NCBI GenBank assembly: GCA_002269645.1
Contig: NIVC01001813.1
Span: forward strand, 62,001 to 126,000
Direction: 5' to 3'
Source: Macrostomum lignano
Taxonomy: Eukaryota
Length of the DNA stretch: 64,000 bases
Shown: piece by piece, positions 34,201 to 35,546 of the stretch
How positions within the stretch are numbered: position 1 is the first letter of the stretch
How the letters are laid out: each line of letters begins with the position of its first letter
The notes under the pieces: generated by a model
Seen by the model: the letters and a program-made list of their open reading frames with translations, nothing else
The model's database searches: none
Told to the model about the DNA's origin: nothing
Position numbers and translations under genes: made by a program

Positions 34201-35546
34201 GAGAGAGAGAGAGAGAGAGAGCCAATTAGAGACCAGCAGAGTGACAGGCTGGAGAGAGAGAGTCAGCCAATCAGAGTAACACTGAGCAGAGACAGGGAGA
34301 GAGACCCAGCCAATCAGAGACCAGCAGAGTAACACCTAGTAGAGAGAGGGAGAGAGAGCCAGCCAATCACAGAATGTATATTGATATTTTCACTATCTGA
34401 ACTGTAATTCTGAAATTGCAGGTGTCCGGCCTTCTTATTTAGTAAGCGACAACTTTCAAAGCTTACTACTTTTGCAATAAAAATGTTTTTTGTCAAATCA
34501 GTCAGTCGCTAAAAATTAGAAGTCGCTAAAAATGACTGCAGAGAGAAAGCGAAGGCACGGTCTGCTCATCGGAGCTCTACTTGTACTATCGGGAGAGTTT
34601 TTGCCGAAACCGGAACGGGGTTCACCCGATCTTCAAGTACGGATACAGGACCGGCCGTGAGTTCAAGTTCGGGATTTCCTGTGCGCCCTGCCGGTCATAG
34701 ACTGGCGTTTCTCTGCGGTCATAGACTGGCGTTTCTCCTCGGTCATAGTCATAGACTGGCTCTCTTTGCGGTCATAGACTGGCGTTTCTCTGCGGTCATA
34801 GACTGGCTTTTCTCTGCGGTCATAGACTGGCGTTTTTCTGCGGTCATAGACTGGCGTTTCTCTGCGGTCATAGACTGGCTTTTCTCTGCGGTCATAGACA
34901 GGCTTTTCTCTGCAGTCATAGACTGGCTTTTCTCTGCGGTCATAGACTGGCGTTTCTCTGCGGTCATAGACTGGCGTTTCTCCGCGGTCATAGACTGGCG
35001 TTTCTCTGCGTCTGTAGTCATAGAATGGCGATTCCATTGGGTTATAGAGTTGCTTCACTCTGCGATCATAGAGTTGCTTCTCTCTGCGATCATAAATTGC
35101 ATTGTTTCGATCACAGAGCAGTTGTTTTCTGCGCTCTGAGCTGCTTCAAAGTGCGCCTGCCTCCAGCGGTCATATGGGACCCGCAACCCCACCTCTCCGT
35201 CTCAGTGTCGATGGTCCGAGAGCTGGAGCAGAACCTGAGGCGCAGGCAGAACCGCTCGTTGACTGACAGCGACAGCTCGTACTTCTCCCAGATACTGTCC
35301 GCTCCGTCCGGTCAGACTCAGGCTCTGCTGCGCCGGAAGCGGGAGGTCAGCCAGTCCGTGCTGCGCCGGCACTACTGCTACTCGGATGAGGCGATCAGGC
35401 GGGAACCGAATTGGCGGCAGAAATGCTGCTGCGGCAGCTGCAGCCGCCTGTTCTTCATCGTGCAGTGCCGCCATCCGTACGAATCCGTGCCGTCTGGCTC
35501 CTGCGACCTGCACTGGGAGCGACTGCCGCTGCGGCTGACTGACTGA
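22230..35546 (+). CDS. Secreted mosaic protein, ~1195 aa: signal peptide, WSC, WSC, C-type lectin, F-type-lectin-like x2, CUB, C-terminal insulin-like domain
   Basis: 14 exons with AG/GT ends giving one open frame (3588 nt): 22230-22350, 22437-22712, 23120-23398, 24091-24294, 24374-24766, 25025-25225, 25304-25723, 26279-26467, 26631-26810, 27469-27861, 33501-33917, 34422-34441, 34542-34656, 35167-35546. WSC (YLGCY...CYCGDSY...CGG..AVSVF), CTLD (SCPENW...CY...W..A...C...GGDL...WIG...C...FVCK), FTP (CAQT...QPWW...LSLCELVAYG), CUB (CQWLI...VLLTF...DYVDVYEG...MTVVFVTD...GF). Confidence 0.8.
23540..24010. repeat. ~37-bp G-rich minisatellite (G-quadruplex-prone), intronic
   Basis: GGGGCGGGGAGTGGGGTTGGAATAGGGAGGGGTTGGA tandem copies. 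Confidence 0.93.
24779..25020. repeat. (ATCT)n microsatellite forming almost a whole intron
   Basis: About 60 ATCT units between donor 24767 and acceptor 25024. Confidence 0.97.
26937..27247 (+). mobile_element. tRNA-derived SINE with CORE-like central domain
   Basis: A box TAGCGTAGTGG (~26945), B box GGTTCGATTCC (~26987), CORE-like TGTGCCCCTTAACAAGACACTTAGCC...TTCAGTTCACCCAACTGTAAAATAGG (27017-27077), (TAA)n-like tail. Confidence 0.78.
27874..28887. repeat. 17-bp satellite (CTGACTAACTGACCCAC); continues at 33007-33490 and also at 25930-26120
   Basis: Tandem array split by the LINE insertion. Confidence 0.96.
28888..33006 (-). mobile_element. Non-LTR retrotransposon ORF2 (AP endonuclease, RT, RNase H, C-terminal CCHC), R1/LOA/I-group-like, 5'-truncated
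   Basis: APE (LQINLQH, LIQEPW, GGDLNAHH, SDH), RT (FRPISL, QGGVLTP, YADD), RNase H (YTDGS, HSDSQAAL, WVPGHVGIRGNELAD), C..C...ET.EH...C. (AAGT)n 3' tail; apparent 15-bp TSD CTGACCCACCTGACT. Confidence 0.93.
31318..31484. mobile_element. 167-bp Tc1/mariner-type MITE inside the LINE
   Basis: Perfect 28-bp TIR CGAGGGGCACTATTAAAGTTCTGAGCCT with TA on both sides. Excision restores the in-frame ORF (EAAKI|PSFLRL). Confidence 0.92.
34018..34360. repeat. (GA)n microsatellite with AGCCAATCAGAG interruptions
   Basis: Read directly. Confidence 0.92.
34542..35546 (+). CDS. Insulin/relaxin-superfamily-like domain (last two exons of the mosaic gene)
   Basis: B-like chain VCSSELYLYYRESFC (Cys codons 34563, 34602), phase-1 intron inside the C-peptide-like linker, RRKR at 35331-35342, A-like chain KCCCGSCSRLFFIVQC (35424-35468) fitting CC-x3-C-x8-C. 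Confidence 0.65.
34690..35000. repeat. 24-bp minisatellite (CTGCGGTCATAGACTGGCGTTTCT) in the intron between insulin-like B and A exons
   Basis: About 12 tandem copies. Confidence 0.93.

Follow-up and report, generated by a model that had tools for sequence, protein, structure and literature searches.

The window analysed here, a 64,000-nucleotide stretch of the Macrostomum lignano genome (assembly GCA_002269645.1, contig NIVC01001813.1, positions 62,001 to 126,000), carries on its plus strand two neighbouring exons, designated e1 and e2 (Table 1), which form a new member of the flatworm insulin-like peptide (ILP) family. The locus is incomplete at its 5′ end and is mislabelled in the public record. 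Judged from the sequence, the two exons probably represent the 3′ three-quarters of a flatworm-type ILP gene, divergent from but related to Smed-ILP-1 of Schmidtea mediterranea and the ILPs of schistosomes. The production of a working hormone from the locus would depend on the 5′ end. Few ILPs have been described from flatworms, and their characterisation is poor; within the phylum, M. lignano serves as the transgenic model for regeneration. A literature search found no report of an ILP from this species.

The finding stands above chance because of the match to a real flatworm ILP and not because of the cysteine pattern alone. The planarian prohormone Smed-ILP-1 (UniProt E3CTK9), the sequence of which is available together with its mass-spectrometry peptides (Collins et al. 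2010, PMC2953531 supplement), was the one family member for which similarity statistics were obtained. A BLASTP comparison of the spliced e1–e2 peptide with this protein provided two collinear high-scoring segment pairs of 25 bits (E 2e-4) and 20 bits (E 7e-3). The former places residues 2-39 of the spliced peptide on residues 49-86 of Smed-ILP-1 without any gap, and the latter places YSDEAI…KCCCGSCSRL on YSPESI…ECCCKSCTML. The Smith-Waterman score was 61, compared with 29.4±4.7 for shuffled sequences, and a score of 61 was not reached by any of the 5000 shuffles in either direction. When the six frames of the window were searched with Smed-ILP-1 by tblastn, e1 ranked first and the A-chain region (35421-35468) third, and these two matches are collinear, lie on one strand and are 770 bp apart. 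Most of the residues that the two proteins share are not cysteines (T-x-C…Y-x-R-x-x-F…N…HPI[F/Y]KY…R…L(L)SM), and the shared HPI[F/Y]KY…LSM block straddles the phase-1 intron. A YSxExI piece bounded by basic residues and containing an extra cysteine is also common to both. Taken by itself, the cysteine pattern could be due to chance: non-genic frames of the window contain three more CC-x(3,4)-C-x8-C sites, and in two of these the spacing is the strict x3. On these alignments, the similarity of the spliced peptide to Smed-ILP-1 is taken to be real homology, which supports the assignment of this sequence to the insulin family in a preliminary description of the locus made from the sequence alone.

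The same description had interpreted both cysteines of e1 as a B chain of the C-x12-C type, one residue longer than the canonical C-x11-C. In the gapless alignment, the first e1 cysteine (TVC) lies on TLC of Smed-ILP-1, which contains the second cysteine of its C-x11-C B chain, whereas the second e1 cysteine (ESFC) lies on an alanine. Only the former thus aligns as a B-chain cysteine, and e1 would begin about seven residues before this B19-like cysteine, midway along the B-chain helix, and thus contain the C-terminal half of the B chain. In this register, the 27 residues preceding the HPI[F/Y]KY anchor score +20 vs −24±10.6 in shuffles (P = 3.5e-4). The C-x12-C pairing scores only 10, with two C-C pairs contributing 18, and requires a deletion of 13 residues. 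According to the alignment, the excess residue in the B chain arises artificially when a canonical cysteine is paired with an extra one. The spare cysteine of the preliminary description is not supported either. Nine cysteines, an odd number, were counted over both exons; if the missing B7-like cysteine is added, the total is ten (the eight of Smed-ILP-1 and two more) and therefore even.

From the second B-chain cysteine onward, the order of parts is the same as in Smed-ILP-1. In both proteins, 19 residues lead without a gap from this cysteine to HPI[F/Y]KY, LSM follows past a spacer, the A chain has the form CCC-x2-C-x8-C and an extension is present C-terminal to its last cysteine. The M. lignano exons differ in that they lack both a signal peptide and the first cysteine of the B chain, two extra cysteines are present (13 residues past the B19-like cysteine and in the C-terminal extension) and the very basic connecting peptide is about 45 residues longer. 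The position of the connecting-piece cysteine also differs: it precedes YS in M. lignano (RR-HYC-YSDEAI-RR, 15 residues before CCC) but follows ESI in Smed-ILP-1 (R-YYSPESINCNAY-KK, 10 residues before CCC).

The sequence strings reported in the preliminary description were all found in place on the plus strand and in the coding frame, including the A-like NWRQKCCCGSCSRLFFIVQC at 35424-35468. The latter contains the CC-x3-C-x8-C spacing and is aligned with the A chain of Smed-ILP-1, in keeping with its assignment as an A chain; in flatworm notation, it reads CCC-GS-C-SRLFFIVQ-C, i.e. CCC-x2-C-x8-C. The basic sites RRR and RRKR are present in the linker as described, accompanied by two RR sites, the last of which lies seven residues before the CC of the A chain. 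A phase-1 intron in the connecting peptide was also borne out. Its phase is 1 with either of the possible acceptors (CCAG at 35166 or TCTCAG/TG at 35205/35206), of which the junction at 35206 has the better pyrimidine tract and fits Smed-ILP-1 better (…IRPELLSM…). This intron contains a minisatellite with a 24-bp unit in 13 copies (34692-35010, Tandem Repeats Finder). The G+C content at third codon positions (GC3) in the insulin-like frame is 0.74 in e1 and 0.85 in e2, whereas the remaining frames reach 0.45-0.57 (0.45 and 0.46 for the alternative frames of e1). The intron, which shows no codon bias, and the downstream flank have values of 0.39-0.54. Since the third-position GC is high in exactly this frame, the insulin-like frame is the coding frame.

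The schistosome ILPs (SjILP, SmILP and ShILP), proteins of 130-133 aa with the A-chain signature CCCX(2)CX(8)C, are encoded by genes with two exons and one intron, and a signal peptide was predicted for SjILP and ShILP but none for SmILP (Du et al. 2017, PMC5391603). As far as can be judged from the published signature and gene structure, on which this comparison was based instead of the sequences, the M. lignano locus shares with them both the CCCX(2)CX(8)C motif and the arrangement of two coding exons with the intron between the B and A parts. The schistosome introns are 8-12 kb long, whereas that of M. lignano comprises 549 bp. Molluscan insulin-related peptides and nematode beta-type insulins have at least eight cysteines and a disulfide beyond the canonical three, the extra pair occupying positions that immediately precede the CC of the A chain and are close to the B-chain N-terminus. 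The M. lignano locus has in common with them a minimum of eight cysteines and, presumably, an additional disulfide. Unlike in molluscs and nematodes, the extra pair in M. lignano, as in other flatworms, would consist of the third cysteine of CCC and the connecting-piece cysteine. The pair of cysteines for an extra disulfide that had been noted in the preliminary description is present, but it should be compared with the flatworm ILP type and not only with the molluscan or nematode beta type. Vertebrate insulin-family genes have a phase-1 intron in the connecting peptide. With insulin, IGF and relaxin (PF00049), the locus shares this intron, the CC-x3-C-x8-C A chain and the basic sites. It differs from the vertebrate genes by the lack of a match to the profile hidden Markov model (HMM), the lack of Gly after a B-chain cysteine, a much longer connecting peptide, the position of an exon boundary within the B-chain helix and nine cysteines seen with ten expected.

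Several results weigh against the assignment of the locus to the ILP family, beginning with the fact that homology stands on a single comparison protein, Smed-ILP-1. The HMM search proposed in the preliminary description did not support the assignment: no match to Pfam Insulin was found at E<=10 for the spliced peptide, its halves or a linker-less B+A construct, nor for a chimera of the Smed-ILP-1 N-terminus with the spliced peptide. The control Smed-ILP-1 itself passed the PF00049 gathering threshold of 23 bits marginally (24.2 bits), and when cut like the M. lignano fragment it still scored 20.9 bits via its A chain. The A chain of M. lignano is therefore more divergent, as the spliced peptide and the chimera score nothing where the cut Smed-ILP-1 scores. 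It lacks [IV]-x-E before CC and an aromatic residue before the last cysteine and contains an LFFIV run; Smed-ILP-1 has both VDE and Y at these positions, and their absence explains why the M. lignano A chain fails the model that Smed-ILP-1 passes. A sequence search of the PDB at E<=10 yielded nothing, and look-ups of encoding contigs for the spliced peptide, the unspliced open reading frame (ORF), the product starting at Met-41 and also Smed-ILP-1 gave none on record. An exhaustive HMMER search of 1.84 billion representatives found the query itself and a protein (P0002, 572 aa with ten 56-aa repeats, from an ENA metagenome contig) at E 3e-12. The latter is spurious: a single weak match, counted over five copies, adds up to its score, and no cysteines align. 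This case illustrates that tandem repeats can inflate whole-sequence E-values. In a single-sequence AlphaFold2 model, the spliced peptide was unfolded, without A-chain helices, with a predicted local distance difference test (pLDDT) value of 34.6 and a predicted template modelling (pTM) score of 0.26. This is weak evidence since the control Smed-ILP-1 also fails without an alignment (mean pLDDT 46.1, no residue >=70), although its B and A helices appear. Finally, the signal peptide and the B7-like cysteine are absent from e1 and e2, and no credible upstream exon was found in positions 1-34541. In addition, word-indexed searches of 5.8 billion proteins with the spliced peptide and with Smed-ILP-1 returned only its own UniProt record and only Smed-ILP-1 itself, respectively.

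In-frame stop codons are located two and four codons upstream of 34542, and a signal peptide and Cys-x4 must consequently be encoded by a further exon upstream that has a phase-0 donor. Such an exon was sought by scanning for phase-0 GT donors preceded by a cysteine at a distance of 3-5 residues, both with and without a requirement for Met and a hydrophobic stretch, by tblastn with the Smed-ILP-1 N-terminus and by selecting GC3-filtered signal-peptide ORFs. The candidates proved to be antisense frames of a long interspersed nuclear element (LINE), the first exon of the neighbouring lectin gene or stop-filled AT-rich junk (56988-57065, other strand). There is little room for an ILP first exon, since a gene encoding WSC, C-type lectin and CUB domains occupies the 12 kb upstream. 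In M. lignano, 30% of genes are trans-spliced, the acceptor motif is YTNCAG, the spliced leader comprises 35 nt with a terminal ATG and the mode of operon spacing is ~100 bp (PMC8629364). By its sequence, the e1 acceptor looks like a spliced-leader trans-splice site, and the leader ATG would be in frame with e1 (M-RESEG…) and would provide no signal peptide. The AATAAA upstream of this acceptor is possibly the poly(A) signal of the upstream gene, at an operon-like spacing. A 5′-truncated copy downstream of the CUB gene, with e1 as its first exon and a transcript processed by spliced-leader trans-splicing, may tentatively account for these features. Its M-RESEG… product would probably not be a secreted hormone because it has no signal peptide. 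That the locus is a normal ILP gene, the first exon of which is unrecognised or absent from the assembly, seems somewhat less likely. An ATG at 34532, 10 nt upstream of the acceptor, was also noticed; it opens a shifted, signal-peptide-shaped frame MTAERKRRHGLLIGALLVLSGEF… (34532-34660, plus strand). This frame has a GC3 of 0.46 and after splicing would end at ~62 codons without any cysteine. It is probably a by-product of the Ser, Cys and Tyr codons of the ILP frame.

The public databases contain the spliced peptide as UniProt A0A1I8I027 (M. lignano), a 151-aa fragment without a start methionine which corresponds to 34542-34656 + 35206-35546. Its residues 1-38 are 100% identical to e1, and the model begins exactly at the e1 acceptor and uses the 35205/35206 junction. 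The automatic name of this record, “DBF4-type domain-containing protein”, is the only public name of the product and would suit an orphan arginine-rich intracellular protein with a zinc-binding C-terminal motif C-x2-C-x8-C-x-H-x8-C-x2-H, in which the insulin-like spacing is coincidental. The model without a signal peptide, the failure to match Pfam Insulin, the chance occurrence of CC-x3-C-x8-C elsewhere in the window and the lack of cysteine-conserving homologues among the 1.84 billion representatives are all compatible with such a protein. However, the Pfam DBF4 zinc-finger model was silent, and no other zinc-finger family of Pfam matched the spliced peptide at E<=10. The DBF4-type name, which presumably originates from a PROSITE profile, appears to be an erroneous automatic annotation of an ILP-like fragment. 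Moreover, the match to Smed-ILP-1 is significant mostly by residues outside the cysteines (HPIFKY, LSM, YSxExI and Y-x-R-x-x-F), it is the top match of the window and collinear over both exons, and the extra cysteine of CCC together with the connecting-piece cysteine fits the flatworm ILP pattern. We therefore regard a zinc-binding protein as improbable.

The other alternatives connect e1 and e2 with the upstream gene. According to the preliminary description, they encode a complete atypical insulin-like domain with the B chain VCSSELYLYYRESFC (C-x12-C), attached to the WSC/lectin/CUB protein and provided with a spare cysteine for tethering or dimerisation. The upstream gene is indeed found on the same strand, at a distance of 625 bp, and encodes a signal peptide of its own, and the nine cysteines of the spliced peptide are an odd number. 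The Smed-ILP-1 alignment, however, places the first e1 cysteine at B19 and not at B7, and the C-x12-C pairing scores worse. The CUB exon cannot be joined directly to e1 in frame, since the GTGAGT donor at 33918 is in phase 1 and the e1 acceptor in phase 0, and the alternative AG acceptors at 34544-45 are of the GAG type and supply no cysteine. The only in-frame path found leads through a candidate micro-exon of 20 nt, which is flanked by good CAG and GTAAG sites, and reads …HMVM-RVRPSYL-RESEG…, without a cysteine. At least one path of this type occurs in 48% of shuffled intervals, so it provides no evidence of fusion, and its third-position GC is low. Among 5.8 billion proteins, none joins the spliced peptide to anything and none contains the CUB exon. 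Two further possibilities were rejected. Read-through at the CUB donor, GTGAGTGT (33917-33937, plus strand), gives …M-R-E-C-G-S-P-G and, if joined in phase 0 to e1, C-GSPG-RESEGTV-C, in which the canonical C-x11-C spacing begins with CG; but the bases that follow, ATGCCT, are no splice donor, and the spacing is treated as a coincidence. An AT-AC (U12-like) intron from ATATCC at 33950 to AC at 34536 would, by inspection, result in the wrong frame. Attachment of the insulin-like domain to a scaffold is thus unsupported. The complete domain of the preliminary description has a low probability, and an ILP module lacking the first half of the B chain and spliced via the micro-exon to the C-terminus of the WSC/lectin/CUB protein is hardly more probable. 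If it were true, an insulin-like domain would be carried by a multidomain lectin scaffold or released from it by a convertase; to our knowledge, such an architecture is known nowhere in the insulin superfamily. In still another arrangement, the upstream gene would end here in a different e1 frame (…HMVM-QRKRRHGLLIGALLVLSGEFLPKPERG…VD, with a stop at ~35266 in e2) with a short hydrophobic anchor, leaving the insulin-like frame untranslated. The two splice sites used are the strongest available, the join is open over 61 codons, GLLIGALLVL is hydrophobic and the same shifted frame from the ATG at 34532 resembles a signal peptide. Nevertheless, GC3 in e1 is 0.46 in that frame vs 0.74 in the ILP frame, which retains 0.85 for 280 nt past the stop, and both the public model and the Smed-ILP-1 match use the ILP frame. 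The hydrophobic run comprises only ~12 residues, and the basic residues flank it on the side opposite to that of a type I anchor. This arrangement is very improbable.

If the locus is a flatworm ILP gene, its complete precursor would enter the secretory pathway, and the canonical disulfides B7-A7, B19-A20 and A6-A11 would form. A flatworm-specific bond would presumably connect the third cysteine of CCC with the connecting-piece cysteine, and a fifth bond might perhaps arise between the two remaining extra cysteines. Prohormone convertases would cleave at the basic sites, and the mature peptide would act on a kinase of the insulin-receptor type.

Table 1 Features of the ILP-like locus and of the gene upstream of it (positions in the window)
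Feature	Position	Strand	Remarks
Signal-peptide exon of secreted multidomain gene	from 22231	+	MHLILSIILFHIAEFLVA…; read from sequence
WSC exon	22424-22735	+	Pfam WSC 5.3e-14
C-type lectin exon	~24283-24780	+	Pfam Lectin_C 1.2e-6
Two exons without Pfam match	25234-25728, 27399-27866	+	Each ends …LC[DE]L[QV].[FY]G
LINE-type retrotransposon	29036-33032	−	Endonuclease 31461-33032; reverse transcriptase + RNase H 29036-31399
CUB exon	33501..33917	+	Phase 1-1; Pfam CUB 2.3e-9; last recognisable exon of upstream gene
Candidate micro-exon	34422..34441	+	20 nt; TTGCAG/…/GTAAGC; would join CUB to e1 in frame
AATAAA	34476..34481	+	Only one in 33.9-35.9 kb (pattern scan); ~60 nt upstream of e1 acceptor
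e1 acceptor CTGCAG	34536..34541	+	Phase 0; fits spliced-leader trans-splice motif YTNCAG
Exon e1	34542..34656	+	RESEGTVCSSELYLYYRESFCRNRNGVHPIFKYGYRTG (translated); GTGAGT donor at 34657
B19-like Cys codon (e1)	34563-34565	+	RESEGTV-C; followed by aromatic YLYYRESF
Extra Cys (e1)	34602-34604	+	
Conserved HPIFKY (e1)	34623-34640	+	In start of connecting peptide
Phase-1 intron in connecting peptide	34657..35205	+	GTGAGT…TCTCAG; public-model junction …YRTG/LSMV…
Exon e2	35206..35546	+	Rest of long connecting peptide, A chain, 25-residue C-terminal extension
Basic sites (e2)	35238-35246, 35331-35342, 35364-35369, 35397-35402	+	RRR, RRKR, RR and RR, respectively
Cys of short piece HYC-YSDEAI (e2)	35376-35378	+	
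A chain (e2)	35424-35468	+	CCCGSCSRLFFIVQC; CC-x3-C-x8-C; e2 string KCCCGSCSRLFFIVQC
Tail Cys (e2)	35502-35504	+	In C-terminal extension
Stop codon (e2)	35544-35546	+	

The recognised domain exons of the lectin/CUB gene look to be in phase 1-1, and its two exons without a Pfam match are reminiscent of fucolectin-type domains. The LINE lies within an intron of this gene and adjoins a 17-bp satellite with 29 copies (33007-33492). Dense micro- and minisatellites surround the ILP exons (34018-34373, 35669-35874, 36570-37028, 37699-38417 and 39859-41000), with (AG)n followed by units of 45, 32, 30, 15 and 20 bp. In each minus-strand frame, the 20-bp array generates ORFs of ~400 codons that would be taken for genes by a naive scan. 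Conserved genes in the neighbourhood are an FHL-like gene with several LIM-domain exons (495-2783, plus strand), an exon with a MitMem_reg (MPN-family C-terminal) domain (4465-4845, minus strand) and Utp14 (7385-11621, minus strand). An exon-like ORF with high codon bias (60722-61018, plus strand) matches the Pfam Dyp-type peroxidase C-terminal domain (4.5e-9). Dyp-type peroxidases are mainly bacterial and fungal and are unusual in an animal genome.

An ILP relative at this locus provides an entry point for studying how insulin signals in a basal lineage of flatworms. In the passage of PMC3923246 which cites Miller and Newmark (2012), planarian ILP-1 is linked to body size and neoblast control. 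The presence of the CCC-x2-C-x8-C signature and the HPI[F/Y]KY spacer in both species would make these features older than the split between macrostomids and planarians. The locus would also be a case either of an extra intron inside the B-chain helix or of a truncated, trans-spliced copy of a hormone gene. Finally, the results obtained with the Pfam profile indicate that generic HMMs miss flatworm ILPs of this type.

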